Below, one piece after another: positions 1 to 53,380 of a DNA stretch of 64,000 nucleotides. Positions within the stretch are counted from its first letter, which is position 1; every line of letters starts with the position of its first letter. The notes beneath the pieces were generated by a model. The model did not search any database, was not told the origin of the DNA, and saw only the letters and a list, made by a program, of their open reading frames with translations. The stretch lies in IMG/VR virus record IMGVR_UViG_3300032236_001850, positions 124,001-188,000 of that record; one strand, 5' to 3'. Both the position numbers and the translations under genes were made by a program.

Positions 1-1
1 C

Positions 2-2781: not shown

Positions 2782-3342
2782 TTATGTAAATTTTGTTGCT
2801 CTTTTAGCTTTTATTAATTTTGTATACAAATCCCTGTTTGGAAGTTTATTTAGAATTTCTTGTAAATCCTCCGAATCCACAAATCTCATTATTCTGGGTG
2901 GGTTTTTTATTAGAGAATCAATAACACATTGATCAAAATCATCAGTTCCGTTATTTTTAAATATCTCATCAACATTACTAAAAACTTTTTTAAATTCCTC
3001 AATTATTTTGTACGGATTTCTTTCAATACACCAGAATGAGTACTTCTCATTATTTCTTGGTTTAAGTCCACTCCAGGCTTCATAGTCCATATTGTCGGCA
3101 TCTTGACTATTCATTAATTCACCAACCTCACTCATAAGCATATAAAGATCAGTCACTGTTGAAGCATCAGCTTCCTCAGCAAACTCTGAAATAACAACCG
3201 CAGCTGCATCAAAGAAATCCTTAGCAACCACGATCAAGTAACCAATCGTTGATACCTCCCTGCCAGTTATTTCCATATAGAAAACAAATCCCATCATATC
3301 AGATTTGTCATTTAGTTCCTCGTATAGTTTAATGTTTCTCAT
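2782..3342 (-). CDS. Hypothetical protein with CTS-like leader
   Basis: Starts MRNIKLYEELND; ATGA overlap with upstream gene. Confidence 0.8.
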   Translation of the reverse strand: MRNIKLYEELNDKSDMMGFVFYMEITGREVSTIGYLIVVAKDFFDAAAVVISEFAEEADASTVTDLYMLMSEVGELMNSQDADNMDYEAWSGLKPRNNEKYSFWCIERNPYKIIEEFKKVFSNVDEIFKNNGTDDFDQCVIDSLIKNPPRIMRFVDSEDLQEILNKLPNRDLYTKLIKAKRATKFT

Positions 3343-3965
3343 AAAAATCCTCTTTTTAATGCCCTTCCTATATGGGAAAAATCCTTTATTCCCGCTTTAT
3401 CCATGATTTTTTTCTTTAAATCCGGACACGGATTCAGAATATAAGTTGATGTTGGTTTGTCCTTAAAGAATTTAATAACCTTCGATTCTGGGATTCTTGT
3501 TATTAAAGATTTTATAAGATCTGGATTTCCACAGTCTATTAGCGGCTCCAAATTTTCGGGATCATCCAGGTATTTTCTATTTGACATATCATAGTCATAA
3601 AGTTCCTTAACTGCAAATTTTTCTATCCCTCTAAATATTGACTCGTAATCGGAAACACTAGACACACTAAATCCCATAATGTATTCCCAATCAAAATCTT
3701 TAAATTCGTAAATACCAATTCTTATCTTATCGTTGGATGTTGGTGTCATCTCTCTCAATTCATACTTCAACACAGTTTCATCCTCACCATGTGGATAAAT
3801 GGTTATCTTAGTTACCTTGCCGTCCTGTTTTTGTTCTGTGTTAATATCCGCCCATTCGGAAATTTTCTTATATGCATCAAGATTTCCCAATGAACCAACA
3901 TAAGGTCTATAAACATTCTCGTTGATTTTTCTTCCGAAAAGATTGAAAGATTTAATTATTCTCAT
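3339..3965 (-). CDS. Hypothetical protein, CTS-like leader plus TGIKD C-terminal module
   Basis: MRIIKSFNLF...; ends KAGIKDFSHIGRALKRGFL; GATATATA at 3970-3977 on minus strand. Confidence 0.85.
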   Translation of the reverse strand: MRIIKSFNLFGRKINENVYRPYVGSLGNLDAYKKISEWADINTEQKQDGKVTKITIYPHGEDETVLKYELREMTPTSNDKIRIGIYEFKDFDWEYIMGFSVSSVSDYESIFRGIEKFAVKELYDYDMSNRKYLDDPENLEPLIDCGNPDLIKSLITRIPESKVIKFFKDKPTSTYILNPCPDLKKKIMDKAGIKDFSHIGRALKRGFL

Positions 3966-4773: not shown

Positions 4774-4806
4774 AAAAAAGGCTGATATCAATATCAGCCT
4801 TTTTTT
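4773..4806. terminator. Bidirectional intrinsic terminator
   Basis: A7-GGCTGATAT-caa-TATCAGCC-T run between convergent genes. Confidence 0.85.
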
Positions 4807-5569
4807 ATATCATTCCAGATTTTAGTTTTCTACCTATTTTTCCGTAATCTTTTAACCCTGTCCTTTCCAATACTCCAGCCTTAAATTTCTCAAGATTGTC
4901 GATCTTATAGAGTTCCAATGGATTTTTCTTGAAAAAATTATCAATATCCTCAAGAACATCATAATTTATAGGATCGCCGATTTTTAATTTAAGTATGTAC
5001 TCTAGATATTTTCTAATGAAATTGGAATATTCCGGAAGATGTAATTTTTTACTCTCCAAACCAGCATAAGTCATATAAAATCTACCCCCATATTCTCTAA
5101 AAGCTAATAAAATTTGGGATATAATAAGATGAAAAATATAGTTATTATCTCCGCTAACCTCTATTTGTCTCTCCCCAGCTTCATCAGTTCCTATATAATC
5201 AAATTTATTCTCGTCAGATTCGCCAATTACAAATCTTATTTTATAAACATTTGAACCTGATCCAAGACCAGGAGAGCAACTCATTATTTTTTCATTGGGT
5301 TCTGGGTTTAGAGCCTGGGTAAAAGCATAACTTATTGTTCCCCAAAGGAAATATGTATTTAATATAACATCAAGTGTCTTGAGCCCATTTGATTTATAAT
5401 CATAGATATCACCAGCATCATAATTAGGAAAAACATGTAGACCAACAGCTTGAGAGTGATTATTTTTATCCACTCTAAAAGTTATACATTTTTCCAAATA
5501 ATGGTATATTGGAATACGATCAATTGATTCTGATTCAAAAAGTTGATCAAAGGATTTTATTATTTTCAT
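4805..5569 (-). CDS. Hypothetical protein, CTS-like leader plus TGIKD module
   Basis: MKIIKSFDQLFES; ends RTGLKDYGKIGRKLKSGMI. Confidence 0.85.
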   Translation of the reverse strand: MKIIKSFDQLFESESIDRIPIYHYLEKCITFRVDKNNHSQAVGLHVFPNYDAGDIYDYKSNGLKTLDVILNTYFLWGTISYAFTQALNPEPNEKIMSCSPGLGSGSNVYKIRFVIGESDENKFDYIGTDEAGERQIEVSGDNNYIFHLIISQILLAFREYGGRFYMTYAGLESKKLHLPEYSNFIRKYLEYILKLKIGDPINYDVLEDIDNFFKKNPLELYKIDNLEKFKAGVLERTGLKDYGKIGRKLKSGMI

Positions 5570-6684
5570 TATATGAGCCCTCCTCTTAATTTTCTACCGA
5601 TAGCACTAAAATCTTTAATCCCAGTTCTTCTTAAAACACCAGCTTTATATTCTGGATAATCATCAAGTAAATAAAGATCCGTTGGATTTTTTTTCATATG
5701 GTCATCTAGGATTTTTTCAACTTCGGAACTCAAAGATGAACCAAGAAGATAACTTCTAGCAAAATCGGTGAGCAAATTGGATTTTTCATTCATATCTATA
5801 TAGTTTTCACCTATATAAATATTCAAATGTTCGATTTCCGTAGTGATTATCTTCTCTATTTCTTTAACCACCTCATCAATAGTTTTATAACCAAGATAAA
5901 TTTTAATATCTCTCATCTTTTTACTACGACCATGAAGATCAAGGTTTCGATCGACATTTTTGCTTGTTACCTTTTTACCTTCCCCTTTCGGTATAATTCG
6001 GATTTCATTTGCATTGGTACCAATCATGTATTGATTATTGTTTCTTTTTACAGCACCGCTTATTTCCAATATAAAATCAGGGAAAATACGTATGCCAGCT
6101 AAGGCCAAATAACGAAAATTTATCACAATCCCAGCATTTTTACCTTGCATATAAATACCACTAATCGAATTAATATGATCTATCAATTTGGATTTACCCT
6201 TGATTAAAGAGAAATCTGTTATGATGTCGCTTCTTCTTTCTTTTCTGTATACAACATATAAATCGATTGGGAGTTCCCATATCTTGGAAAAGATGAAAGC
6301 ATCATCGTCAACAAGCTCTTTTGCTTCCTTCCTATTGAAATCATTAGGTGCAAACTTATAAACAATATCTCTGATGAAAGTTTGAAGCAGATCCACAAGA
6401 TTCGAAGAGTATTTCATACCGTAATGGCTCCCACTTGAAACAAAGGTAAAGTGCCAATCGCTTCCAGATTTATAAAAGTATGGGCTGCCCGGATTGTTAA
6501 CATAGTCACTGGTGTTTTTGTTTATCAACACATTTATTCTACCGGTTCTTGTTGGGTAAAGTCTATACCATTTTTGAATTTGCTCGAGTTCTCTAGTTCC
6601 TTCGGCTAGTCTGAAGAACTCCTCACAGTCCTCATTCATTTTGGCTGCTTCAAAAAGTTCATTAAAAGTTTTAATTATTCTCAT
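5569..6684 (-). CDS. Hypothetical protein, CTS-like leader plus TGIKD module
   Basis: MRIIKTFNELFEA; ends RTGIKDFSAIGRKLRGGLI; GATATATA at 6689-6696 (minus). Confidence 0.85.
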   Translation of the reverse strand: MRIIKTFNELFEAAKMNEDCEEFFRLAEGTRELEQIQKWYRLYPTRTGRINVLINKNTSDYVNNPGSPYFYKSGSDWHFTFVSSGSHYGMKYSSNLVDLLQTFIRDIVYKFAPNDFNRKEAKELVDDDAFIFSKIWELPIDLYVVYRKERRSDIITDFSLIKGKSKLIDHINSISGIYMQGKNAGIVINFRYLALAGIRIFPDFILEISGAVKRNNNQYMIGTNANEIRIIPKGEGKKVTSKNVDRNLDLHGRSKKMRDIKIYLGYKTIDEVVKEIEKIITTEIEHLNIYIGENYIDMNEKSNLLTDFARSYLLGSSLSSEVEKILDDHMKKNPTDLYLLDDYPEYKAGVLRRTGIKDFSAIGRKLRGGLI

Positions 6685-7921: not shown

Positions 7922-8554
7922 ATGAAAATAATAAAGACATTCGAGAGTTTCGAGGAGAAGGAATACACCTTTGATGAACTATCACAAGATGCAAAGAATC
8001 ATGCAATAGAGAACGAGAGAGGTTCATTGTATGACAGTATGGGTGATTGGTGGTACGAAGGAACAATAGAGGATGAAGCACAAAAACTAAGGGATGAGGG
8101 ATTTGAAGATGTTGATATACAATTTTCAGGATTCCACAGTCAAGGTGATGGAGCTTCATTTACTGGCAGAGTATCAGACATTAAACTTTTTGTTAAAGGC
8201 ACTCTCGATATGAAAACCATGAGCGACCAGGTTTTAGATAACATTTACATCTCAGTGGTTAGAACAGACACCAGACACGTTCATGAAAACTCGGTTAGGT
8301 TTGATTGTGAAGTTGACGGTGAGGAAGAAATAGTTTTATTCAGAGCACCAGGTTCAAATCTAGATATAAAAATATCAATTCAGTCTCAGTGTGATAAAAT
8401 AGAAGAAGTCGGAGCACCTTGGGTCAAGAGTAGATGTAAGGAGATATATGAAAAACTCGGTAAGGAGTACGACAGCTACTTTGAAGAGGAACACATAATA
8501 GCAGACATTAAAGCAAACGACTGTAAGTTTGACGAAGACGGAGATTTAATTTAA
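7922..8554 (+). CDS. YTFxELS-family phage protein with CTS-like leader
   Basis: YTFDELSQDAK..., FSGFHSQGDGASF; GATATATA 4 nt upstream; paralogous to 9805..10410. Confidence 0.85.
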   Translation: MKIIKTFESFEEKEYTFDELSQDAKNHAIENERGSLYDSMGDWWYEGTIEDEAQKLRDEGFEDVDIQFSGFHSQGDGASFTGRVSDIKLFVKGTLDMKTMSDQVLDNIYISVVRTDTRHVHENSVRFDCEVDGEEEIVLFRAPGSNLDIKISIQSQCDKIEEVGAPWVKSRCKEIYEKLGKEYDSYFEEEHIIADIKANDCKFDEDGDLI

Positions 8555-8586
8555 AGCACATCAAAAAGATGTGCTTTTATTTTTTT
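8554..8586 (+). terminator. Intrinsic terminator
   Basis: AAGCACATC-aaaaa-GATGTGCTT then T run. Confidence 0.75.
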
Positions 8587-8634
8587 ATTCCGAAATGATT
8601 TCATATATTTGCAATGATAATTATAATTGTAACT

Positions 8635-9159
8635 ATGAAACACTTTCTGGATAACCTAAACATCTTCCAAGATAGAAACGACGGAAAATTAAAATTGCTA
8701 CCAAAATTAGACGGACTATCTGCTTCTTACACACCATATTCTGAATCATATAAAAGCAGATTACCAGAAATGCTTGCTTCAAGAACGGACAGTCAAATTA
8801 AAAGATTCGAAACGGAAGCAAGAGGTAACCTCGGCAAGGGTCTAAGACCGTACACTCTAGGAAAATACGATGAATTAAACGAGATCGCGGAACCAGATGC
8901 GGAAAAACTAATTGCAAAATATGTTGCTTTAAAACTTAGAAACCCAACTCCGGTTATACTTTGGCATTATCCAAGTATGGTTAAATTAGCTACACCACAT
9001 ATGATTTCAAGGATTGAGAAAATTCTTGAGTATGAAAAAACTAAAGCAGATTTATACCAAGCTATAGAGGATCTTGAGCATAGTCACAAAAGATACCTAG
9101 AAGGAAACGAAAAAACTATAGAATCAGTTCTTAAAAAAGGACACAATCTCATGATATAA
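8635..9159 (+). CDS. Hypothetical protein ending KGHNLMI
   Basis: ATG 8635 after promoter 8604; tail shared with next gene. Confidence 0.8.
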   Translation: MKHFLDNLNIFQDRNDGKLKLLPKLDGLSASYTPYSESYKSRLPEMLASRTDSQIKRFETEARGNLGKGLRPYTLGKYDELNEIAEPDAEKLIAKYVALKLRNPTPVILWHYPSMVKLATPHMISRIEKILEYEKTKADLYQAIEDLEHSHKRYLEGNEKTIESVLKKGHNLMI

Positions 9160-9804: not shown

Positions 9805-10410
9805 ATGAGAACCCTAAATATTTACACATTTTCAGAATTGTCGGAGGAAGCCAAAAAAAGAGCAATTCAGGACGTTAGAGAGGAGCTAAAAGAGAATACT
9901 CCTCATGAACTTGTGTTCGACTGGGCTATCGATGATTGCTGGTTATTCGAACCAAGCGAGCAAGTTATGAAGGAAACTTTTGGCGATCAATACTTGGAAG
10001 ATCTTGGTGACGATTTCCTTATGAAGAATTTGAGAAAGGGTATTTCTCACAAAAATGGTAATCTTAACGTCACACAGGCACTAAAGATAAACAATCACGA
10101 TATGTTTAAAACGTGGTTGGGTATTCCCAAGATCATTCAGAGATATGTTAACTTTTCAGTGATAGGTTCTGACGAAGATCCATCAACTTTGGATTTTGAA
10201 ATTCTTTTACCTAATTACGATCCCAGATCGTTAGCAATAAAAGGTTGCTCTGAAAATGCAGTTAAGTTATTTGACACCCACATGATTTATGTGGAGGGAA
10301 AAATCATAAACGGTATAAGAGAGTATTTCAATGACGATAATTTAGAGCAAGCCATACTCTCCAGCGATCGTTATGAGTTTTTAGAAAATGGCAGATTATA
10401 CAACAGCTAA
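9805..10410 (+). CDS. YTFxELS-family phage protein (no leader)
   Basis: YTFSELSEEAKKRAI...YEFLENG; own early promoter. Confidence 0.85.
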   Translation: MRTLNIYTFSELSEEAKKRAIQDVREELKENTPHELVFDWAIDDCWLFEPSEQVMKETFGDQYLEDLGDDFLMKNLRKGISHKNGNLNVTQALKINNHDMFKTWLGIPKIIQRYVNFSVIGSDEDPSTLDFEILLPNYDPRSLAIKGCSENAVKLFDTHMIYVEGKIINGIREYFNDDNLEQAILSSDRYEFLENGRLYNS

Positions 10411-14357: not shown

Positions 14358-15179
14358 TTATTTTGTTCCAGTTGAAAGTCCAAATGCTGCCTGAGCGTCC
14401 TTTGCATTAACGTCTCCTCCATCCTCGCCGAAAAATTTTCTAGCCCCACTTACTATTTTACCCAGTAATCCTCCAGGATTTTCCTTTGCATCTTTCTCAT
14501 CATTATTAGAAGTTGCAGAGTCACCTCCGATAATATCATCTCCAGGTAAACGTCTTTCTGCATTATCCTTACTAACATCAATCATATCTTTCTTAACAGC
14601 TTCAGTGAAGCTATTATCAAAATCGCTACTTCTGTCCGGGAAGTAATCTATAAATCCAAGAAGACCGTCAACTAGGACAGATCTATTATATGCACCTACA
14701 CCCTGTCCGTCTTTTAGTCTAACATTACCCTCAATTGTTGTGAATTTCTTACCGTTATAATCAACACTAGTAACTATTCCAGCATGACCACCACCCTCTC
14801 TTTTTGCAATCATTATTTGACCAGGTTTAACTAGAGAAAAATTAGATCTTGCCTGATCTGCAGTTATCTTTTTACCCCCGGTTTTTTCCCATTCCTCCAA
14901 TGCAGAACCAGTTTTATATACTGGATTGGTGATTCCACTTTTTTTACTGAACTCGTCAAAAATATAGTAAATGAAAGCCATACACCAAGGCTGACCGTCA
15001 CTTATTCCTACTGATCTCTGAAATTTATTAACATCGGAACCACTATTGTTACCGACCTCCTTCGCTTTTATATTATTTGATATAACCTTAGCTAGCTCAG
15101 ATCCAGCTCCTGATGGATTATCTAATTTGAATCCGGAGTCTTCATTTATAAATTCATTGAAACTCTTTAATCTTTCCAT
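14358..15179 (-). CDS. CHAP-domain peptidoglycan hydrolase with CTS-like leader
   Basis: GQPWCMAF (Cys), GGHAGIV (His), TIEGN; leader MERLKSFNEFINE. Confidence 0.88.
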   Translation of the reverse strand: MERLKSFNEFINEDSGFKLDNPSGAGSELAKVISNNIKAKEVGNNSGSDVNKFQRSVGISDGQPWCMAFIYYIFDEFSKKSGITNPVYKTGSALEEWEKTGGKKITADQARSNFSLVKPGQIMIAKREGGGHAGIVTSVDYNGKKFTTIEGNVRLKDGQGVGAYNRSVLVDGLLGFIDYFPDRSSDFDNSFTEAVKKDMIDVSKDNAERRLPGDDIIGGDSATSNNDEKDAKENPGGLLGKIVSGARKFFGEDGGDVNAKDAQAAFGLSTGTK

Positions 15180-15704: not shown

Positions 15705-15735
15705 AAAAAGTCCGATATTGCTATCGGACTTTTTT
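15705..15735. terminator. Bidirectional intrinsic terminator
   Basis: A5-GTCCGATA-ttgc-TATCGGAC-T6. Confidence 0.85.
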
Positions 15736-16414
15736 ATGCGGTTAGTGTTTTGTTTATATTGTTTATTGTTGATGTTAATTTTCTTTCGTAATCTGGAGCT
15801 GAAGCATATCTCTGATTGTTTACATTAACAAACTTTTTTAATAACTCAGGAGCAGTTTTATTCTGGGAAGGAACCACATAACTCTTAGCCATTGTTCTAT
15901 AGTAAGCATCGATACCAGATTGCCAATCATTATGGTTAACAACTGCACCGCTATCAACATTACCAACATTGAATGGATTTTTAGTTCTGATTGGTTTATT
16001 TGATGTGTCTCTACTTAAACCACCCTCCAACGTTAACTGAGCTAAAGCAAGTTGTGGAGGAATATAAGCACCGTGATCCATCACGGCCTTTTTCGCACCG
16101 AGGGCTAGCATTTCACCTTTTATTGGGGATGATGGATTAGTTTTATCAATCCATTTTTGAGCAATATCAGCATAAGCTTTAAATCCTTCAGAAGTTTTAA
16201 GATCCAACGGTGTAAAAATGCTTCCGTCATTAACATTATTTAGACCCAAACTCTTAAGAGCTATTTGATCCGCGGTGTCAGGAATGTCAAGATTCAAAGA
16301 ACCTGTTCCGGTGGTATCGCTATCTGATTTAGCATTAAGTGCATTACTAATTAATAAGGCAGGGTTAAAATCCATCTCATTAATAAAGTCACCAAAAGAT
16401 TTTATGTTGTTCAT
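15734..16414 (-). CDS. GH73 glucosaminidase with CTS-like leader
   Basis: LAQLTLEGG, NPFNVG, YASAPDYERKL; probable start MNNIKSFGDFINE at 16414. Confidence 0.82.
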   Translation of the reverse strand: MNNIKSFGDFINEMDFNPALLISNALNAKSDSDTTGTGSLNLDIPDTADQIALKSLGLNNVNDGSIFTPLDLKTSEGFKAYADIAQKWIDKTNPSSPIKGEMLALGAKKAVMDHGAYIPPQLALAQLTLEGGLSRDTSNKPIRTKNPFNVGNVDSGAVVNHNDWQSGIDAYYRTMAKSYVVPSQNKTAPELLKKFVNVNNQRYASAPDYERKLTSTINNINKTLTA

Positions 16415-38216: not shown

Positions 38217-38561
38217 ATGGATAAAACAACTACAGAAAATATTCTAATAGACTATATCAGCCATGATGTATTCAAAAAAAATATGAGACTGGATCACAGT
38301 TCGGGTATAGCCACAACCGTGGAATATATGATTTTAGATATCAGAAACATCCATTGTCATATAGAGGAAATAAAGATAGGTAAATCAAATTTACCAACAT
38401 TGGATAACCGATTTTTTGCTTACATAAAAATTAGAGGTGTGGAAAAAGCTATAATGTCACACTTTTATCCAATGTTCAATGTTTCTAATTTTGTAGCTGA
38501 ACATATAGGCAGGAACTTAATTTGGGTTGATATATACACTACAAATAAACAAATCAAATGA
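38217..38561 (+). CDS. Hypothetical protein
   Basis: 114 aa; LIWVDI near C-terminus. Confidence 0.75.
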   Translation: MDKTTTENILIDYISHDVFKKNMRLDHSSGIATTVEYMILDIRNIHCHIEEIKIGKSNLPTLDNRFFAYIKIRGVEKAIMSHFYPMFNVSNFVAEHIGRNLIWVDIYTTNKQIK

Positions 38562-38878
38562 ACATAATCAAAACCTTCGAAAGCTTCCATGCATTCGATA
38601 TGAACAACGAAAAGCTAGGGGTGGAAGGTCTAAGCAAATTCATAGGTAAACCACTTCTTGGTGGATATATCACAAACCCATTTGTTAATAATGCAGCTTC
38701 AGTTGGAGTGATGATTAGCGACACTCCAGACTCAGAACCAAATGATACGGATAACAAAATTCTATTTTGGATTAACGATTACTTTTGGCAATTGGATGGT
38801 CTTAGAGATAAGAAAACACCAAAGGATGAACAACTTCTTTCAGAGATGGCCAAAGTAATAGATGCAAGTGTACAGTAA
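38558..38878 (+). CDS. Hypothetical protein with CTS-like leader
   Basis: MNIIKTFESF; GATATATA at 38529. Confidence 0.8.
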   Translation: MNIIKTFESFHAFDMNNEKLGVEGLSKFIGKPLLGGYITNPFVNNAASVGVMISDTPDSEPNDTDNKILFWINDYFWQLDGLRDKKTPKDEQLLSEMAKVIDASVQ

Positions 38879-39516: not shown

Positions 39517-39885
39517 ATGATTAAGAAATACGACGATTTTATTAATGAATCAATAGGTTCCACATTCACACCTGAACAGCAGGAAATCATAAAAAATTTT
39601 GCTAAGGATCTGGAAAAGGTTTCATTGTATAAAATAAGTACAGAAACAGATAGTTCAAAATTTGAAATAAAGATGAATAAGTATTCTAATTTGTATGAAT
39701 ATGTCTATTCATGCTACATCAGCAATCGTATTTTATATCTAAGAAATTATAAAAGAAGAACATCGGGTTCATTAAGAGGTGTTATCTCTAATTTTCATGA
39801 GGAGTCACCAGAATCTCTAGAGGATGCATTGGGTATTATTGCAAAGAATACAGTTAAACAATACGAATTTAAAAGAATAAAATAA
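39517..39885 (+). CDS. Hypothetical protein, CTS-like leader plus FKRIK tail
   Basis: MIKKYDDFINES...YEFKRIK. Confidence 0.8.
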   Translation: MIKKYDDFINESIGSTFTPEQQEIIKNFAKDLEKVSLYKISTETDSSKFEIKMNKYSNLYEYVYSCYISNRILYLRNYKRRTSGSLRGVISNFHEESPESLEDALGIIAKNTVKQYEFKRIK

Positions 39886-39892
39886 TAGAATC

Positions 39893-40039
39893 TTATTTTT
39901 TCTTTCTTTTTTTCTTACGTTTAATTCTAACACAATTAGGAACTATCCTACCATCCAGTTCTTTAGTGCCTATCTGCTTAAATCCTACCCAGCATGGATC
40001 ATTCTTTTCGGCTAAAAATTCATCAAATTTTAGTATCAT
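39893..40039 (-). CDS. 48-aa CTS-leader peptide with CW...NCV motif and basic tail (not in ORF track)
   Basis: MILKFDEFLAEKNDPCWVGFKQIGTKELDGRIVPNCVRIKRKKKRKKK; TAATG coupling to 40039..40620. Confidence 0.8.
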   Translation of the reverse strand: MILKFDEFLAEKNDPCWVGFKQIGTKELDGRIVPNCVRIKRKKKRKKK

Positions 40040-40620
40040 TAGTCTTCTATTTTTTTAAATTCTCTAATCGAATTTTCATCAAAAATTGCAACATTCTTGC
40101 TTCCTCTTTCAACCAAACAGAATCCATCATAGCCCGATTTTTTAATTGCTTCTAATATAGGAGCACATTCTATGATTCTCCATGCTCCGTGTTTGATTCT
40201 CCAAAGGTAGTGATAAACACTATCACCTGGGTCATCAACATCAAATTCTCTGTCAGTGTCGTAATCATATCCCTTCATACCAGAAGCACTAACAGGTTTA
40301 AATTTGGTACCGTTAGTTTCATCCTCATATCCGCTAACAATCATCTTCTCTATCACACCCTTCAGGTCAAGCTTCTTGGCAATCTTAGGGTCCATAGGGT
40401 CACAAAGGTTAACTCCAGGTTTTAGCCACACTTCCCAAACTGCTCCATCCGGAAATTTTGATCTCTCATCAGCACCAGAAAAATCCTTAGCAAATGCAAG
40501 ATTACTAGTCAGAAATATACAACCACCAAATCTTTTCATTTTAGGTGGGAAATCTCCTTTTCTATTTCCGTGGTACAATCTCTCACCAACGAAAGATTCA
40601 AATAAAGCTATGTGTCTCAT
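40039..40620 (-). CDS. ADP-ribosyltransferase-fold protein with CTS-like leader
   Basis: RLYHG, IFLTSNLAFAKDF, GYDGF...VAIFDENSI. Confidence 0.7.
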   Translation of the reverse strand: MRHIALFESFVGERLYHGNRKGDFPPKMKRFGGCIFLTSNLAFAKDFSGADERSKFPDGAVWEVWLKPGVNLCDPMDPKIAKKLDLKGVIEKMIVSGYEDETNGTKFKPVSASGMKGYDYDTDREFDVDDPGDSVYHYLWRIKHGAWRIIECAPILEAIKKSGYDGFCLVERGSKNVAIFDENSIREFKKIED

Positions 40621-40635
40621 TAATGTATGTTAAGA

Positions 40636-41208
40636 TTAGTATCTATCATCATCATATTTTTCCTCAATCATGAAATCAAAAATATCTTCGTATCCTGAGG
40701 TGTAATCAAGTTTTTTGGCTATATCCTTAATCTCACTATCAGTTTTTCGGTGATTATCGAAAGCTTCAGCAAATTCTTCATTAAATTCTAATTTTGGCTT
40801 CCAATCCATTTTTCTTGCTAAATTGATTGCCTCTATCTCTTTTTGATTAACCGGAGGTGCATCAAAAATTCCAACCTCAACATCCACCGTATCTCTATCG
40901 TAAAGGTACCATCCACACGAATCCAGCCAATCATGTAGTAATTCTTCAAGTTTTTCAGATGTTGCATTTTCTGGAACCTGAAAGTTCCATGGTTCTAAAG
41001 GATTTTCGTCATCAACACCAATCCAATTCGAAAGAACAACAAGAAGCTCGTTGAAATCCTTTTGTAGATTCATACCCTTAGAAACCCCAATTGTTGTAGT
41101 TTCTTCCTCCTCCGGACAATAAAAAAATATTTTTGCCACTATAATTTTACCTCCACCTGAACCCGAGGATTCAGATTCGAATAGTTCATATTTTCTAATG
41201 TGTTTCAT
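40636..41208 (-). CDS. Acidic hypothetical protein with CTS-like leader
   Basis: MKHIRKYELFES; GATATATA at 41226 (minus). Confidence 0.82.
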   Translation of the reverse strand: MKHIRKYELFESESSGSGGGKIIVAKIFFYCPEEEETTTIGVSKGMNLQKDFNELLVVLSNWIGVDDENPLEPWNFQVPENATSEKLEELLHDWLDSCGWYLYDRDTVDVEVGIFDAPPVNQKEIEAINLARKMDWKPKLEFNEEFAEAFDNHRKTDSEIKDIAKKLDYTSGYEDIFDFMIEEKYDDDRY

Positions 41209-41300
41209 CGATTAACTTTTTTGTATATATATCGGTTAAACAAATCCTCATTTTTATTTTTTTATTTGGAAAGGATTTCTTATATTTGCATATCAAATCA

Positions 41301-44268: not shown

Positions 44269-44568
44269 ATGGAAAATATTAAACCTTACGAGTCATTCAA
44301 TTTGGAACCAGAAGAAGTAAACGAAAACTTCTGGACTAAAATGTTTGGCAGACCCACAGTCGATGATGCTGCACATGACTCACTAAGAGGAAAAGGCTTC
44401 AGTCACAGAGGCAAGGACAGCGAGAGATCGGAAGACAACTACATCATGTTTGATGGTAACAAATTCTATCCAGATCAGATTGAGTATGATGATTATCATT
44501 CAACCAAGGAACTTCCAAGAGTAGAGAATGGCAAACTCATCATAGCCAACCCAGCCTGGAGTATGTAA
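44269..44568 (+). CDS. Hypothetical protein with CTS-like leader
   Basis: MENIKPYESFNLE; GATATATA at 44243. Confidence 0.8.
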   Translation: MENIKPYESFNLEPEEVNENFWTKMFGRPTVDDAAHDSLRGKGFSHRGKDSERSEDNYIMFDGNKFYPDQIEYDDYHSTKELPRVENGKLIIANPAWSM

Positions 44569-44677: not shown

Positions 44678-46609
44678 TTAGATAAATCCTCTTTTTAATA
44701 ATTTACCAATCTTTCCGGCGTCCGTTATTCCAGTTCTTTTTATAACACCAGCTTTTACATCAGGATGCGAGTCTAGCATATAAATATCCAATGGCATCTT
44801 TTTAAAATAATCATCCAAAGCAGAGTCACCTATAATCGAATCAAGAAGCGTAAATGTTTCCGGATGTTCCTTAAAAAACTCTATAAATCTACCCACATCC
44901 CATCGACCCTCATTCTGCATAATATATTTTTTACCATTTATATCAAATGAAAAATACTCACCAATCTCATCAGGTAACCCCTTAAGTGATTTCAAATTGT
45001 TACCTGTACAAATAAAATATCCTCCGACCTCCCCCGGTGCTCCTTCTAAGGATTCAAGATTGTTATCATAACATTGGAAGCTTCTACCAACGATTTCAGG
45101 TGCTCCCTCCAGAGTCTTTAATTTGTTTTTTGCACACACAAATGAATTCTGGATTTCCCTAGGTGCTCCCTTCAATGACACAAGTTTGTTATCATTACAA
45201 AAGAAGCCAAAGGAAAATTGAGGTGCTCCCTCCAATGAGGTTAACTCGTTACTGGTACAACTGTATTCACCCTCAACTATCTCCGGACCTCCTTTTAATG
45301 ACTTCAGCTTGTTTTCTTGACACTCAAACCTACCGGCCACCGTTCTAGGTCCTCCCTCCAGTGATTCTAGTTTATTCTTATTGCAAGTGAAATTACCATT
45401 AACAATTTGAGGTGCACCTTCAAGGGTTTTCAAATTGTTGTCTGAACAATCGAAACCATCCACCGTTTGTGGTGAACCTATTAACGATTCTAGATTACTA
45501 TTATTACAAGCTAAACTTTTCACTTTCTCTGGTGCTCCCATCAGGTTTTTTAAATTGTTGTATGAACAATTGAAACCACCATCCACCGTTTGTGGTGCTC
45601 CTTTTAGTGATGTTATATTATTTCTAGAACAGTTGAAATCTCCAGTAACGTGACCAAATTCAATGCCTTGGAAATTTCTTATTCCCCAGTCATTACATCT
45701 AAAAGTTCCTTTTATGTCCACAAGTCCAGTCTCCTCATTTATTTTCCATTCCCCACTAGTGCACTCGTTCAACCATTTAACTTTATTCGATTCCCTTCCA
45801 GTTCCACTAAGATCTTTAATTCCGGTTCTTTTTAGCACACCACTCTTTAAATCGGGAAGGTCGTCTAGTAGATATAAGTCCTCAGGATTCTCAGTGAAAT
45901 GATTGTCAAGTATATTCTCAATTTTTTTACCGTTTACTATTCCAAGATCGGAAAGACATGTCATCACATCCATATCATCTAATTTAATAGCGATACGAAC
46001 AAGGTCAGCAGCAAGATCAGATTTTATCTTAGAATTAAGAACAACCCCAGCTTTAATACCAGGAATTGACAGCAGAAATTCAAGTTGTTTGAATTGTCTA
46101 TAAATTTTGTAAATACCAGAATTTCCAGTAGGAAATCCTCTACTGTCACTGTTTGATGATGTTCTTAATTCTTCCTTAGATAGCTTATCTAGGATTCTTT
46201 TGATCGAAAGATTTAGTCCATAGAATTGTCCATTAAAAACAGCTTCCTTCAATGTAGAATATGAGATCTTTGAAACATATGTCATTTGTGCAATACTATA
46301 CAATATCAACTTTGTCATTGCATCGTTCATCTCCTCTTGTGTGGAGAAAGGCATATCTTTCTCAATTGTAAAACTTCCATAAATCAGGTTGACCTTTCCA
46401 TCACCGGAAGGCTTTAATGAACATGAGTAGGAGGTTCCAAAATTATATTCTCTCACCCCCAGGGAACTACTCTTGGCACCATCTCCCAAAAATTTCCTAG
46501 CCTTCTTATAAATAGGAAGTTTACTCAATGTTTCAAAAGACGGAAACTCCTCCTTGTCCTTTTTGGTTGCGCCTTCAAACAACTCATTAAATGTTTTTAT
46601 TCTTCTCAT
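44678..46609 (-). CDS. Chimeric LRR protein: CTS leader, domain, TGIKD module, 22-aa LRRs, second TGIKD module
   Basis: About 11 repeats of CxxNxLxSLxGAPxxVxGxF; module at ILDNHF...RTGIKD and at the C-terminus. Confidence 0.88.
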   Translation of the reverse strand: MRRIKTFNELFEGATKKDKEEFPSFETLSKLPIYKKARKFLGDGAKSSSLGVREYNFGTSYSCSLKPSGDGKVNLIYGSFTIEKDMPFSTQEEMNDAMTKLILYSIAQMTYVSKISYSTLKEAVFNGQFYGLNLSIKRILDKLSKEELRTSSNSDSRGFPTGNSGIYKIYRQFKQLEFLLSIPGIKAGVVLNSKIKSDLAADLVRIAIKLDDMDVMTCLSDLGIVNGKKIENILDNHFTENPEDLYLLDDLPDLKSGVLKRTGIKDLSGTGRESNKVKWLNECTSGEWKINEETGLVDIKGTFRCNDWGIRNFQGIEFGHVTGDFNCSRNNITSLKGAPQTVDGGFNCSYNNLKNLMGAPEKVKSLACNNSNLESLIGSPQTVDGFDCSDNNLKTLEGAPQIVNGNFTCNKNKLESLEGGPRTVAGRFECQENKLKSLKGGPEIVEGEYSCTSNELTSLEGAPQFSFGFFCNDNKLVSLKGAPREIQNSFVCAKNKLKTLEGAPEIVGRSFQCYDNNLESLEGAPGEVGGYFICTGNNLKSLKGLPDEIGEYFSFDINGKKYIMQNEGRWDVGRFIEFFKEHPETFTLLDSIIGDSALDDYFKKMPLDIYMLDSHPDVKAGVIKRTGITDAGKIGKLLKRGFI

Positions 46610-46744: not shown

Positions 46745-47152
46745 ATGAAACACATCAACACATTCTACCAACACATTAACGAATCAAAATCTCAAATAGC
46801 GGAAGCCATAGAGGTTAACGCAGATGAATTTGAATCAGCCGGTTCAAAAGAAGGAAATTTCATGGTTAATTTTCCAAAGGAAGATGTTGAAATTTTGAAG
46901 GATTTGAGTGAATTGATTGGATTTGAATGCGTTTCACAAGTTGGCATATTTCTAATGGTTACTAGAGATCCAAGCACTAGAGAAAAACCATTGGCATATT
47001 TTTCTAAAACCGCTAAATTATACAGAATGGAAATATACCCGAAGGAGCTTACCTGAGATAAATTATACTACTTGGGTGATTCACCAGAATCATTGATGGC
47101 TGTTTTCCTCAGCTATGTTGGATGGAGACCAGAGTGGATTAAAATAAGATAA
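46745..47152 (+). pseudogene. CTS-leader/WIKIR gene interrupted by in-frame TGA (47054-47056)
   Basis: Frame continues after TGA as DKLYYLGDSPESL...PEWIKIR-TAA. Confidence 0.75.
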
Positions 47153-47156
47153 TCAA

Positions 47157-47584
47157 ATGAAACACATACATACATTCTACCAACACATCAACGAATCTCA
47201 ACTCGAAATAGAATCGACCAATCTACCGGATGGGGTAAAAGAGATTGATGAAGAGGAACTTAAAAAATGGGGAAAAAAGCCACACAAATTCTTACCATCG
47301 GGGATGATGAAGCATTTAAACAGTTTAAAAATTGGACTGGAGTGACCAAATCTGAGGATCCCCGGGATTTGCTAGTCCTTAAATCATCATCCACCTCAGA
47401 GGAATATCAATGGTGCTTTGTTCTTTGGACCAAGGAAGAAGATGAGGAGAAAGCAAGACGATTTCTTTCAAGAACACTAGAGGGTGTTTTTGTAACATAC
47501 ATTATCACCTCACCGTCACAAAAAGTTAGAGAGCAGCTAATGCACTACATCAACGATTATGTTAAATGGATCAAAATCAGATAG
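47157..47584 (+). pseudogene. CTS-leader/WIKIR gene split by -1 frameshift at A-AAA-AAG (47273-47279)
   Basis: Leader in frame of 47157; WIKIR in the -1 frame (47267..47584). Confidence 0.75.
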
Positions 47585-47605
47585 ACAAATAAAACATAGA
47601 CAATA

Positions 47606-48046
47606 ATGAAAAACTTAATGATTTTTACTGATTTTTTAAAAGAATCAATTAATTCAGGTGGAATGCCACATCGAAGATATGAAGAAATAACTAAAGATCA
47701 ATGGCGAGAGAAAAAAGAAACACTCCAATGTGTTAGCTTGACAAATGATGAGATAGAGTCAATAGATGAAATATATGAATTTATAAGGGATGTTATATAC
47801 CCAAAAGCAGAAAGAATAAAGTTTTGGGAGTTTTCTCAGAAAGACACTCAATATCTCATCGAAATACGTGATTTAAACATTATGATTACTAAATATTCAC
47901 CATCAATGTGGTTAATTTTTACTAATAGGAATGAGGATGTAGAAGATGAACATTTTTATATTGCAACTTCATTAAAGGAAACAATCGATCTTACAGCATA
48001 TCTTGCGGGTGAATTATTTCATATCGAATGGATCAAAATAAGATAG
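47606..48046 (+). CDS. CTS-leader/WIKIR protein
   Basis: MKNLMIFTDFLKES...IEWIKIR. Confidence 0.85.
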   Translation: MKNLMIFTDFLKESINSGGMPHRRYEEITKDQWREKKETLQCVSLTNDEIESIDEIYEFIRDVIYPKAERIKFWEFSQKDTQYLIEIRDLNIMITKYSPSMWLIFTNRNEDVEDEHFYIATSLKETIDLTAYLAGELFHIEWIKIR

Positions 48047-48050
48047 AAGA

Positions 48051-48683
48051 ATGAAACACATCCATACATTCTCACAACACATCAACGAGAGCTCCTCTCA
48101 GGAGATCATGGACTTCTGCAAGAAGTACAAGATTTCAATTGAACAGTTTAGAGGACAGGAGGAAATCCCAGGTGATTTTAGAAAACTTTCAAATCTAAAA
48201 TCCATTCCTTCAGGTTTCAACCCAAAGGTTGAAGGGAATCTGACTCTTTCCTCGATTTACAGCTTACCTGATGGGTTTTCACCCGTTGTTGGTGGAGATC
48301 TGGAACTGCATGAACTGAATCATTTGCCAGAGGGATTCTCACCCACTGTGGGAAGAGATCTACATCTGAACTATCTAAATCGTATTCCATATGAATTCAC
48401 TGTTAATGTGGGAGACAATCTGATTTTAGATAATGTGTATGAGGTTGGGAAGGGATTCTCACCCACTGTGGGCGGCAATCTGGATCTAGGATCACTCAGA
48501 ATTTATGCGGAAGGATTCTCACCCATCGTGGGCGGGAATCTAATCTTAAATAAAATGGAAAGCATTCCGCTAAAAGGTGTTTCGCTAAAAGGAGTTAAAG
48601 GAAAGATAGAACTTTTTCACAATTACAATCGTGTAAATCTAGAAACCATAGCGGGTGATATAAAATGGATCAAAATAAGATAG
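48051..48683 (+). CDS. CTS-leader/WIKIR protein with 22-aa LRR-like repeats
   Basis: Repeats LxxLPEGFSPxVGGDLxL; DNA repeat ggattctcaccca about every 66 bp. Confidence 0.85.
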   Translation: MKHIHTFSQHINESSSQEIMDFCKKYKISIEQFRGQEEIPGDFRKLSNLKSIPSGFNPKVEGNLTLSSIYSLPDGFSPVVGGDLELHELNHLPEGFSPTVGRDLHLNYLNRIPYEFTVNVGDNLILDNVYEVGKGFSPTVGGNLDLGSLRIYAEGFSPIVGGNLILNKMESIPLKGVSLKGVKGKIELFHNYNRVNLETIAGDIKWIKIR

Positions 48684-48695
48684 GGTATATAGCAC

Positions 48696-49517
48696 ATGAA
48701 AAGAATACTAACATTCCACCAGCTATTTGAAGCAGCCAAACCAAAGGACACATCTTGGATGCCAACCCCCGCGGAGATAAGTCAATTGGAAATTTTTCAA
48801 AATCTGAGAGATGATCATCTTATACGTTTATCCGAACCATACCTCTTAACACAGGGTCAGATAGAAAGGAATGTGAGATCAATAAGTTTTTCAACAGACA
48901 CCAATAACCTTTATAGACTGGAGCCAAATTCAGATGGCACAATCAACATCAAATTTGGAAGAAGCTACATAGCCAAAAATAAGCCTTTCAAAAACCAGGA
49001 GGAAATGACGGATGTTATTATTTACTTAATGATCGTAACAATAGCAATTTATGATCCTGTATGGAGTCGTAAGCCACACAATCCACCCAAAAGAACTCCT
49101 TTCAATGACGATCACGTGAAACTAAATGGGGAATTGGAGAGAGGTGATCTCGAAGGCTTGCTAAACGGCATCACAGAGCTTATGAAATCCAAATTTGGAT
49201 TCTGTGAGGAAAGACTGGTCCAGATTGCGATCATTCTGATGTGGTACATGAAGTCAGCCACACAGGAGGCAAAAAACAACTTCATAAAGCAACTGATCGT
49301 CAATGTGACAGCAGAGAGAATGTTCTTGCATTGGTGCCATCTGCCTAAAATTTTATCTCATCGCCAACCCTTCGTGTCGATGCCTGCAGTTACGGAAGGT
49401 CTCTCCATGGCATTCTCAGATTTTCTTAATAACAATGGGGATGCTCCAATGCCACCAGCTCTGGGGGAGTTCCTTTCCAAGATAACCGATGGGTTCAGAT
49501 GGATTAAAATCAGATAA
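48696..49517 (+). CDS. CTS-leader/WIKIR protein
   Basis: MKRILTFHQLFEA...FRWIKIR; N-terminal part resembles that of 44678..46609. Confidence 0.85.
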   Translation: MKRILTFHQLFEAAKPKDTSWMPTPAEISQLEIFQNLRDDHLIRLSEPYLLTQGQIERNVRSISFSTDTNNLYRLEPNSDGTINIKFGRSYIAKNKPFKNQEEMTDVIIYLMIVTIAIYDPVWSRKPHNPPKRTPFNDDHVKLNGELERGDLEGLLNGITELMKSKFGFCEERLVQIAIILMWYMKSATQEAKNNFIKQLIVNVTAERMFLHWCHLPKILSHRQPFVSMPAVTEGLSMAFSDFLNNNGDAPMPPALGEFLSKITDGFRWIKIR

Positions 49518-49576
49518 CCAGATAAATAAATCATCACTGATTAAAGTGGGATATATAAATAAAATAAAACCAAAAA

Positions 49577-50062
49577 ATGAAACACCTAATCGCCTTTGAG
49601 ATTTTTGAAAATGAGAATATGGAATCTCTAATTCCTAAAATTGCTATTTTTAGCGAGGGTGACTACTATAAACTAAAGGAATATATAAAATCCAATAACA
49701 TAAAGACTGATCTCATTCCCCACCATTTCCCATACGAGGAATATTACAGAGATAATATTAAACGTGGTCAGAGGGGCAATAATTTTTTCTATATCATCAA
49801 CGATAAGGTTATGTTGTACCCAAGTCCAGGATACGATAAAAAATTGAAAAAACTAACAGATAGGGATCTAAATTTTCCTAAATCCCACAGAGCTGCATAC
49901 ATTAAAGATTTCAGAAACATCCCACTAGAGGAACTTTACAACAACTCGGAAGAAATACTTGGGTACTCAATATTCCTACTGGACAAACTTATAACAAAGG
50001 CGAAGCAAATGACAAGAAGCAAATTAACACCATTTGAGGTGACTCTATTCGATAGAGATTAG
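49577..50062 (+). CDS. Hypothetical protein with CTS-like leader
   Basis: MKHLIAFEIFEN; GATATATA at 49550. Confidence 0.82.
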   Translation: MKHLIAFEIFENENMESLIPKIAIFSEGDYYKLKEYIKSNNIKTDLIPHHFPYEEYYRDNIKRGQRGNNFFYIINDKVMLYPSPGYDKKLKKLTDRDLNFPKSHRAAYIKDFRNIPLEELYNNSEEILGYSIFLLDKLITKAKQMTRSKLTPFEVTLFDRD

Positions 50063-50065
50063 CAC

Positions 50066-50521
50066 ATGAAACACATACACACATTTCACCAACACGTCAA
50101 CGAATCCCAATCTCTACCTTCAGGGGTAAGCAAGGTGACAGCCGATGAGTATACAAAACAAAAATGTGTTCCTCTATCCCAGGAGGAAACTGAAAACATC
50201 TTATTCTTAACTAATATAGTGGAACTTGCTTCTTCGACAGATCCACAGAGGAAAAACGCGGATAGCGAGGACAATCAGATCTATCTTTGCGCTGGTTTTT
50301 ATCCTTATGGAGCTATTCCGCCATGGGCATTCTTCGGAAAGTCAAAGTCAGGAATTTACTATCTATCAGCTAATCCCACACGATTAACGGACACAGAAGG
50401 CCAGGAAAGCAACTATTACGCTGCAAACTCATTGCAACCTCTAATTTCAATTGCTCTTGATATGTTCATTAAACTTGGAATGGTTGATACCTCCGGAATC
50501 AGCTGGATCGAAATCAAGTAA
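50066..50521 (+). CDS. CTS-leader protein ending WIEIK
   Basis: MKHIHTFHQHVNES...ISWIEIK. Confidence 0.85.
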   Translation: MKHIHTFHQHVNESQSLPSGVSKVTADEYTKQKCVPLSQEETENILFLTNIVELASSTDPQRKNADSEDNQIYLCAGFYPYGAIPPWAFFGKSKSGIYYLSANPTRLTDTEGQESNYYAANSLQPLISIALDMFIKLGMVDTSGISWIEIK

Positions 50522-53005: not shown

Positions 53006-53380
53006 ATGAAACACCTAATGCTTTTTGAAAGCTTCTTTCGCCGCGGTGCGATGGATCCGACCGCCTTGCAATTGGTCAAAATCGGCGGTGCGGTTAATCC
53101 GGCTTTAGGCTTCCTTAAAAAACACGACATAGATACCCTTACCGAAGCTGGTATAGAGACCGAAGTGGTTGGAGAAATCACAGGGAAAGACGACTACGCT
53201 TTCTGGGATATCAACGGTGTTTTATCGGATCCCTATTATGTTGCTTTCACTCATCCTGGCAAGGAGAATTCCCTTATGACAAAGGAGAAGAATTTCGAGA
53301 TACATCCTGGTAAAATATACTTCCGAAGAAAGGGTGGTTGGGCGAAAGAAAACGTCAGTGATTTCATCCAATCAAGATAA
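53006..53380 (+). CDS. Hypothetical protein with CTS-like leader
   Basis: MKHLMLFESFF; GATATATA at 52981. Confidence 0.8.
   Translation: MKHLMLFESFFRRGAMDPTALQLVKIGGAVNPALGFLKKHDIDTLTEAGIETEVVGEITGKDDYAFWDINGVLSDPYYVAFTHPGKENSLMTKEKNFEIHPGKIYFRRKGGWAKENVSDFIQSR

Follow-up and report, generated by a model that had tools for sequence, protein, structure and literature searches.

The gene at positions 40,039–40,620 (minus strand) of a 64,000-nucleotide (nt) stretch of phage DNA was analyzed computationally. This stretch, referred to as the window, corresponds to positions 124,001–188,000 of the IMG/VR record IMGVR_UViG_3300032236_001850; the virus is called the pond phage here, and positions in its complete record carry the prefix C1. 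Judged from its sequence and predicted fold, the gene product is a divergent, stand-alone relative of the ART-PolyVal family (PF18760) of ADP-ribosyltransferases (ARTs) and a kin of the anti-CRISPR enzyme AcrIF11. The best-supported reading is that of a protein functionally like Alt of phage T4, yet belonging to the ART family of polyvalent ejection proteins and tagged with a leader of the type found on T4 internal proteins. To the whole statement, namely a head-loaded, injected ADP-ribosyltransferase acting on a host molecule, we give an even chance.

The two motifs from which the initial annotation had proposed an ART fold, YHG and FLTS, occupy residues 16–18 and 36–39 of the open reading frame (ORF); the codons of His17, Phe36, Asp165, and Glu171 were verified on the plus-strand sequence. 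They are not due to chance: Y16, H17, G18, I35, F36, T38, E151, E171, and N176 are identical in all 120 homologues listed from a word search, which retrieved 158 proteins at E ≤ 0.01. All conservation counts given below refer to these 120 proteins. They are 56–84% identical to the query, carry no product names, come from contigs of up to 523 kb, and in 117 cases have a length of 189–209 amino acids (aa). The blocks L-Y-H-G-N-R-K-G-D-F-P-P, I-F-L-T, F-A-x-x-F, W-R-I-I-E, G-Y-D-G-F, and x-V-x-E-R-G-S-K-N-V-A-I-F vary little or not at all among them. Direct scans of the 193-aa protein against Pfam, PHROGs, and NCBIfam gave no match. Since the word search and these scans left the protein open, an exhaustive profile search was used.

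With the family profile, 251 of 1.8 billion proteins were detected at E ≤ 1e-3; many are 1000–4400 aa long and matched in their interior. The matched residues of the giant proteins correspond to the Pfam ART-PolyVal domain (for example, residues 1098–1277 of P0185 and 14–185 of P0139; E 1e-24 to 1e-7), and these PF18760 segments adjoin LPD22, LPD38, and GP88 domains, which are typical of polyvalent proteins. Alignment of the query family with domains passing the PF18760 cut-off by hhalign gave a probability of 99.8% and an E value of 9e-30 over 168 columns, a result that is not fully independent because the PF18760-passing domains had been found with the profile of the query family. In an alignment-independent search of language-model features, a PF18760 cluster ranked first (0.94, 188 shared features), and a mixed PF26151 (AcrIF11)/PF18760 cluster appeared at rank 25. 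Stand-alone relatives of 180–250 aa exist, and the pond-phage protein is a single domain that is not part of a multidomain polyvalent protein.

Structure prediction, one of the checks suggested in the initial annotation, gave an AlphaFold2 model of the ART fold with a pLDDT of 90.5 and a pTM of 0.84; values below 50 were limited to residues 1–8. The model contains strands at residues 15–19, 34–38, 60–66, 166–171, 174–179, and 185–191 and a helix at 41–48, which comes after Phe36 and holds the invariant F-A-x-x-F. A mostly helical insert of about 100 residues (~67–165) lies between strand 60–66 and Asp165 and shows the lowest conservation within the wider family. Foldseek and exhaustive VIA-align searches returned ARTs almost exclusively (the top ~30 VIA-align rows and the top Foldseek rows). 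The best match among solved structures was 9k3a_B, residues ~1418–1604 (Z 7.4; rmsd 4.6 over 138 residues; Foldseek E 5e-4), followed by diphtheria toxin (Z 7.0), a RES toxin (9r35, Z 7.0), ParT (Z 6.5), MbcT (6fkg, Z 6.4), and AcrIF11 (Z 6.4 for 6kyf and 4.7). Arr, cholix toxin, exotoxin A, many PARPs, and Tpt1 were also matched. Among the predicted viral structures of BFVD there were 38 matches at E ≤ 1e-3 (best 2e-7), the top ones being named ART-PolyVal-like, PolyVal ADP-ribosyltransferase, or large polyvalent protein. Z values of 6–7 are middling and, taken alone, could reflect a common arrangement only; the weight of the fold search lies in the uniformity of the list and in its agreement with the sequence evidence. 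The fold is borne out by the model, the fold search, and the profile homology, and we regard the assignment of an ART-PolyVal-type fold and kinship as highly probable.

The protein shares with ART-PolyVal (the Tox-ART-HYD2 or "N4-ART" clade, found in polyvalent proteins of phages and conjugative elements) the same fold and sequence family, including YHG in strand 1, I-[YF]-x-T in strand 2, G-[YFH]-D-G before the last strands, and the K-N-x-A-x-F strand. A further predicted likeness is co-delivery with the DNA, as proposed for polyvalent proteins (PMC5512222). In contrast, the pond-phage protein consists of 193 aa alone instead of a domain within a 1000–4000-aa polypeptide, lies beyond the reach of the Pfam model, has Phe for Tyr in strand 2, and is headed by a short leader of the T4 type in place of fusion to MuF, portal-associated, or other virion modules.

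The putative active site is formed by His17, Phe36, and Asp165 together with the invariant Glu171 and Asn176. ART-PolyVal was defined by three residues, a strand-1 His, a strand-2 Tyr, and a strand-5 Asp, distinct from the R-S-E site of T4 Alt (Iyer et al., PMC5512222). His17 aligns with the invariant His of the PF18760-passing domains and, like Glu171, is also invariant in the wider alignment. Asp165 aligns with their invariant Asp and is conserved in 112 of the 120 homologues, while Glu171 and Asn176 never vary; either acid, Asp165 or Glu171, may be the one that faces the NAD site. At the strand-2 position several PF18760-passing domains (e.g., P0185 and P0165) also have Phe and others Tyr; Phe36 is best read as a tolerated variant that does not exclude the protein from the clade.

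The Phe for Tyr in strand 2, the loss of Asp165 in the remaining eight homologues, and the absence of a direct Pfam match might be taken to mean that the ART fold has lost its catalytic activity and is retained as a head protein with a binding or structural role. This seems quite improbable to us. The side chains H17, F36, E151, E171, and N176 are retained both in the 120 homologues and in relatives of only 25–30% identity, which is the pattern of a working site. Furthermore, AcrIF11Pae1, an experimentally active ART, has the site H-F-H-D with Asp115 as the catalytic residue (PMC12421852), so that H-F-...-D is also the site of an active enzyme. The protein is likely to be catalytically active, and we conclude that it very probably functions as an enzyme of the ART-PolyVal/AcrIF11 kind that uses NAD+. 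The sequence does not reveal its target.

AcrIF11 (6kyf, 8dwq, PF26151) is similar in being a small stand-alone phage ART with an H-F-...-D site and a variable helical region, which has been proposed to recognize the target (PMC12421852). No significant direct sequence or hidden Markov model match links it to the pond-phage protein; it is shorter (132–167 aa), has no leader, and is expressed in the cell, and its target Csy1 (type I-F CRISPR) has no known relevance in a Bacteroidota host. The structural matches to the RES toxin and MbcT, among the best obtained, raise another possibility, an ART-fold NADase or NAD+ phosphorylase of the RES/MbcT type that lowers host NAD+ or blunts NAD-derived defense signals. 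The phage encodes a salvage enzyme of the NAPRTase family (C1:79647-81332), which would allow NAD+ to be refilled. However, the Z values do not discriminate among ART families, and the sequence kinship is with ART-PolyVal/AcrIF11 (H-Y/F-D), not with the R-E-S site of the RES domains. Destruction of NAD+ is therefore considered unlikely.

The second main feature of the protein is its N-terminal leader of 13 residues. Although these residues lie outside the fold and are modelled without confidence (pLDDT < 50 for residues 1–8), Phe7 is kept in 115 and Glu8 in 119 of the homologues, a conservation equal to that of the catalytic core; position 13 is Glu in 78 and Asp in 18. A candidate cleavage site follows Glu13 (V11-G12-E13, just before strand 1), and L-F-E8 is a possible second one. 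The leader core, FESFVGER, scores 12.2 bits, a value reached by 3.5e-5 of internal 8-mers.

Leaders of this kind occur throughout the genome. A fixed-spacing pattern was present at 28 of 654 ORF N-termini, where internal positions would predict 1.2 (Poisson p ~1e-28, only indicative, as the pattern was defined after looking). With an iterated position matrix, whose threshold was taken from 110,000 internal windows with 0.5 false hits allowed, 66 of the 654 ORFs matched, or 63 without three plain signal peptides. The fixed-spacing patterns and the matrix superseded a loose pattern that had given a 2.3-fold enrichment. The consensus is M-K-[HN]-I-K-T-F-E-[QE]-F-[FI]-N-E-[AS]. Where two leaders share a residue, the codon is the same only 57% of the time; since codons differ freely where residues agree, the leader is selected as a peptide and not as DNA, and a DNA-level repeat as its cause was ruled out. 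The leader also heads neighbors of the ART homologues in related contigs, as well as several stand-alone ARTs of only ~30% identity. Of 78 genes within 50 kb of the 462-kb uncultured phage LR756500, just 1 carries it. For most leader proteins there is no Pfam match. Known domains are present in two of them: SLT lytic transglycosylase in one (C1:29892-30623, E 1.6e-9) and an AAA_5/MoxR-like ATPase in the other (C1:21670-23166, E 2.4e-7). Lytic transglycosylase is a classic ejected activity. Transglycosylase and ART domains co-occur in polyvalent proteins, as seen in the BFVD matches and also described in PMC5512222.

The leader resembles the capsid targeting sequence (CTS) of T4. In the T4 record (NC_000866), IPII and IPIII start with M-K-T-Y-Q-E-F-I-A-E-A and IPI with M-K-T-F-K-E-F. 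Within the ten-residue CTS, residues 4 and 7 serve targeting and residues 8 and 10 processing (review of Black's work, PMC9026906), and a CTS tag alone suffices to load foreign proteins into T4 heads (PMC9026906; PMC5694885). When the sequences are aligned on the aromatic pair, CTS residues 4, 7, 8, and 10 correspond to leader positions 7, 10, 11, and 13. Within the core, most information resides in positions 7 and 10 (4.0 and 3.5 bits), and only M1 and H3 compare among all 14; positions 11 and 13 make up the [FI]-x-E end, which is followed by Ala or Ser and is of the protease type, [IFLV]-x-E. The T4 core scored on the matrix of pond-phage leaders only gave 10.6 bits, reached by 1.5e-4 of internal 8-mers. 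The signals are alike in being N-terminal, 10–20 residues long, with two aromatics three apart and then [ILV]-x-E, and in being common to otherwise unrelated, fast-evolving small proteins in both phages. They differ in that the common form of the pond phage is three residues longer at the N-terminus, and in that ~60 genes are tagged compared with a handful in T4, the targeting role here being putative. The initial annotation had spoken of a capsid leader; this appears as a genome-wide N-terminal signal with a core matching the T4 CTS, and the phage encodes T4-type versions of the prohead protease, the portal, and the capsid protein. We lean slightly towards the view that the leader means head packaging. 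In the literature searched, no paper linking capsid targeting sequences with megaphages was found.

Head machinery of the T4 type is encoded in the record, which is complete at 434,509 bp, carries direct terminal repeats, has a G+C content of 35%, and contains no N. At C1:296799-298763, a 654-aa ORF starts with a prohead protease domain of the T4 type (Peptidase_S77), and the Gp23-family major capsid protein (C1:298781-300505) follows directly. The Peptidase_S77 domain spans only residues ~37–170 of this ORF, and the C-terminal remainder, which is long and acidic, may represent a fused scaffold. A T4-type portal (Portal_T4, E 5e-56), a T4-type large terminase, and a tail sheath are also encoded. 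The nearest relatives of the capsid protein in the phage collection belong to the 462-kb uncultured phage (45% identity) and to the Lak megaphages of Prevotella (44%); further ones are found in uncultured phages of 630–735 kb and in isolated Flavobacterium, Chryseobacterium, and Tenacibaculum phages. The host is probably a member of the Bacteroidota, because of these capsid relatives and the start codons without Shine-Dalgarno-like spacers.

A third line of evidence comes from the motif GATATATA. In the form [AG]ATATATA it lies within 50 nt of 86 start codons, mostly 12 or 25–32 nt upstream. It precedes 36 of the 63 leader genes but only 50 of the 591 others (odds ratio 14, p 5e-19); the numbers become 55 of 63 and 116 of 591 when a simple operon rule is applied. 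Among the large non-leader genes, the motif stands before those for the portal, the tail sheath, the prohead protease, and a neck-like protein, and before a gene for a 1087-aa protein with collagen-like repeats, possibly a tail fiber; the other large ones with the motif are ORFs without a family match. The replication and nucleotide-metabolism genes lack the motif, while the leader genes interspersed among them carry it. From the genes it precedes, GATATATA is a candidate promoter element of late, structural genes. It should be mentioned that the class with 12-nt spacing would give almost leaderless mRNAs.

Taken together, these features suggest the following course of events. The gene, in the middle of its three-gene unit, would be transcribed late with the virion genes from the GATATATA-type promoter. 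The 13-residue leader would, in a T4 CTS-like manner, guide the protein to the prohead's scaffold core during assembly, and the T4-type prohead protease would probably trim it after V-G-E13 or L-F-E8. The mature enzyme would remain in the head with the DNA and enter the next host cell, probably one of the Bacteroidota, where it would use NAD+ to ADP-ribosylate a host macromolecule in earliest infection. The target is most likely a transcription or defense protein, and the variable helical insert (~67–165) probably selects it. All of this is inferred, from late transcription through packaging, cleavage, and injection to the use of NAD and the target; head-packaged ARTs as such are an established theme (PMC5512222, PMC9503650).

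Several observations weigh against this picture. On the side of the enzyme, the direct family scans were silent: PF18760 gave no match on the protein at E ≤ 1 and none on the genome at E ≤ 10, and PF26151 gave none either. The middling Z values, the replacement of Asp165 in some homologues, and the strand-2 Phe in place of the Tyr of the family definition point in the same direction. On the side of packaging, the ART gene lies ~130 kb from the head module among small unknown genes, whereas many packaged ARTs adjoin portal or terminase genes. The leader occurs on ~10% of the genes, including the AAA ATPase, compared with only a handful in T4, which may mean that it stands for something other than packaging. 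In Flavobacterium phage MaF61, an isolated but distant relative, it was found on none of 38 genes. In addition, the promoter role and the timing of GATATATA are deduced solely from the genes that it precedes.

These points bear on the main rival explanation, according to which the protein is an active ART that is made and acts in the infected cell, like T4 ModA/ModB or AcrIF11, and is not packaged. The leader would then be, for example, an interaction helix, a tag for an assembly site or a chaperone, or a degradation signal. In favor of this, the gene lies amid small accessory genes and at a distance from the head module; AcrIF11, a neighbor both in structure and in feature space, is an expressed anti-CRISPR enzyme (PMC12421852); and leaders on a tenth of the ORFs, including the AAA ATPase, are many for head cargo. 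On the other hand, the leader fits the determinant positions of the T4 CTS and ends in the protease-type [IFLV]-x-E, and the genome encodes a T4-type protease. The upstream motif is furthermore common to the leader, portal, sheath, and protease genes, even amid replication genes that lack it. An unpackaged enzyme thus seems possible though rather doubtful, and delivery from the head is preferred.

Another question is whether the modified molecule would be a protein. A NADAR protein is encoded in the genome (C1:74661-75098, E 1e-52), and in the related 520-kb contig L026 a NADAR gene (8250-8753) lies 1.7 kb from the ART homologue. This arrangement might indicate DarT- or pierisin-like ADP-ribosylation of nucleic acid bases, which NADAR would reverse or limit on the phage's own molecules. 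However, NADAR is 90 kb from the ART gene in the pond phage, the other related loci have different neighborhoods, and DarT is a weak structural match (Z 3.6). The clade has also been described as related to protein-modifying ARTs (PMC5512222). Modification of nucleic acids is considered very improbable.

The initial annotation had likened the protein to T4 Alt. As an analogy this holds: both have an ART fold, a T4-type head, and an N-terminal propeptide of the prohead-protease kind, although cleavage is putative here, and the pond-phage ART is likewise proposed to be made late, packed into the head, injected, and first to act. As a statement of homology it does not hold within the ART subclades. 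Alt is a 682-aa protein of the R-S-E Alt/VIP2 clade (PMC5512222), whereas the pond-phage ART has H-F-D, and a search of the genome found neither an Alt-type ART (PF03496) nor a Macro domain (PF01661). No ART paralogue was found in the 434.5-kb genome; the gene is present in a single copy.

The best solved match, 9k3a chain B, is an ejection protein of cyanopodophage A4 that is located in the capsid-internal pre-ejectosome. It differs in being a podovirus protein of more than 1600 aa with 12–14% identity. The paper describing this structure makes no mention of ADP-ribosyltransferase. Residues ~1418–1604 of this chain may be an unannotated module of ART-PolyVal type.

Three aspects are new: a conserved stand-alone ART-PolyVal relative outside the reach of the Pfam model, its occurrence in a Bacteroidota megaphage together with a targeting leader of the T4 type, and the scale of the leader set with its common promoter motif. 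Head delivery of ARTs is known for T4 Alt and predicted for polyvalent proteins, and the polyvalent-type ART has hardly been studied so far. Because its members are small (193 aa), free-standing, and highly conserved (more than 150 clusters, ~60% identity, contigs up to 520 kb), the family is a convenient entry point for biochemistry. The leader, in turn, offers a simple, testable rule for the likely head cargo of an uncultured megaphage. If this rule is true, the ~60 orphan genes here and similar ones in related pond phages become a catalogue of candidate injected effectors, and the T4 targeting mechanism is extended to distant Bacteroidota megaphages. It is tentatively conceivable that some 60 unrelated tagged proteins, with the ART as the conserved member and with the transglycosylase, the AAA ATPase, and numerous orphans among the rest, form one very large cargo that is packed into the giant head for injection. 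With similar reserve, the pond phage might deliver as separately tagged small proteins an arsenal that other phages fuse into polyvalent proteins.

The coordinates of the features in the window are given in the table below. The standard bacterial code was used for all ORFs.

Table. Positions and strands of the features discussed, numbered within the window.
Feature	Position	Strand	Remarks
GATATATA motif	41226..41233	-	25 nt before the ATG of the first gene of the unit; candidate late-type promoter element
Unit gene 1, 190-aa leader-bearing protein	40636..41208	-	Leader score 20.8; 15 nt upstream of the ART gene
ART-fold protein gene	40039..40620	-	One ORF, ATG start, 193 aa; stop codon 40039-40041
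Leader (codons 1-13), putative capsid targeting propeptide	40582..40620	-	Matrix score 21.4; V-G-E end
ART domain	40042..40581	-	Residues 14-193; from AlphaFold2 secondary structure and alignment with PF18760-bearing proteins
His17 codon	40570..40572	-	gtg on + strand; strand 15-19; aligns with invariant His of PF18760-passing domains
Phe36 codon	40513..40515	-	aaa on + strand; strand 34-38; Phe in 120/120
Asp165 codon	40126..40128	-	atc on + strand; directly precedes strand 166-171; aligns with invariant Asp of PF18760-passing domains
Glu171 codon	40108..40110	-	ttc on + strand; second invariant acid, end of strand 166-171
Unit gene 3, 48-aa protein	39893..40039	-	Its ATG overlaps the ART stop by one base
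Leader genes	2075-2779, 2782-3342, 3339-3965, 4805-5569, 5569-6684	-	N-terminal leader
Leader genes	7922-8554, 9805-10410	+	N-terminal leader
Leader genes	14358-15179, 15734-16414	-	N-terminal leader
Leader genes	38558-38878, 39517-39885	+	N-terminal leader; shorter form in 39517-39885
Leader gene	44269-44568	+	N-terminal leader
Leader gene	44678-46609	-	N-terminal leader
Leader genes	46745-47056, 47606-48046, 48051-48683, 48696-49517, 49577-50062, 50066-50521, 53006-53380	+	N-terminal leader

The ART gene is the middle one of three tightly packed genes on the minus strand. A scan of this unit for sigma-70 promoters and terminators gave no sites above those in shuffled sequences. The upstream 190-aa protein is almost an orphan, with 2 homologues among 5.8 billion proteins and no Pfam, PHROG, or NCBIfam family above the cut-off. 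The downstream 48-aa protein has a short leader of T4 length ending in L-A-E (core 8.8 bits), followed by a D-P-C-W...V-P-N-C-V Cys motif and a Lys/Arg-rich C-terminal run. PHROG matches to its residues 12–38 (best E 7e-6) place the motif inside larger phage proteins. In its small size and basic charge this partner is similar to the T4 internal proteins.

The neighbors of the ART homologue differ in four related loci and show no mutual similarity. Since the neighbors vary in this way and the upstream gene is nearly an orphan, a toxin-antitoxin reading with a conserved antitoxin or immunity partner was dropped. Conservation of the ART across the clade while its neighborhood changes is reminiscent of the contrast between the conserved targeting tag and the variable internal proteins described for T-even phages (PMC3012670).

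The window contains 23 leader genes, including the ART gene, both of its unit partners, and the shorter-tag gene 39517-39885. Several of them are tandem paralogues, such as three in 46745-50521 that start with M-K-H-I-[HN]-T-F. No tRNA gene was found in the 64-kb window. None of the RNA runs searched contains the ART locus, and neither a 5-kb megablast nor a protein tblastn against 50,697 phage records gave a match. Near-identical DNA is present in pond metagenomes and in viral-fraction metagenomes of three studies besides the likely source. The PDB sequence search with the family profiles found no ART; its match of the C-terminal third to a cycloisomaltooligosaccharide glucanotransferase (E 0.013–0.6) was rejected as chance, being below significance and in an unrelated fold context. 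Finally, a row of very large genes (871–1704 aa) at C1:107879-126062, ending at window positions 1-2062, encodes proteins with N-terminal collagen-like G-x-T-G repeats. These are probably tail fibers, and the last of them is preceded by the GATATATA motif.

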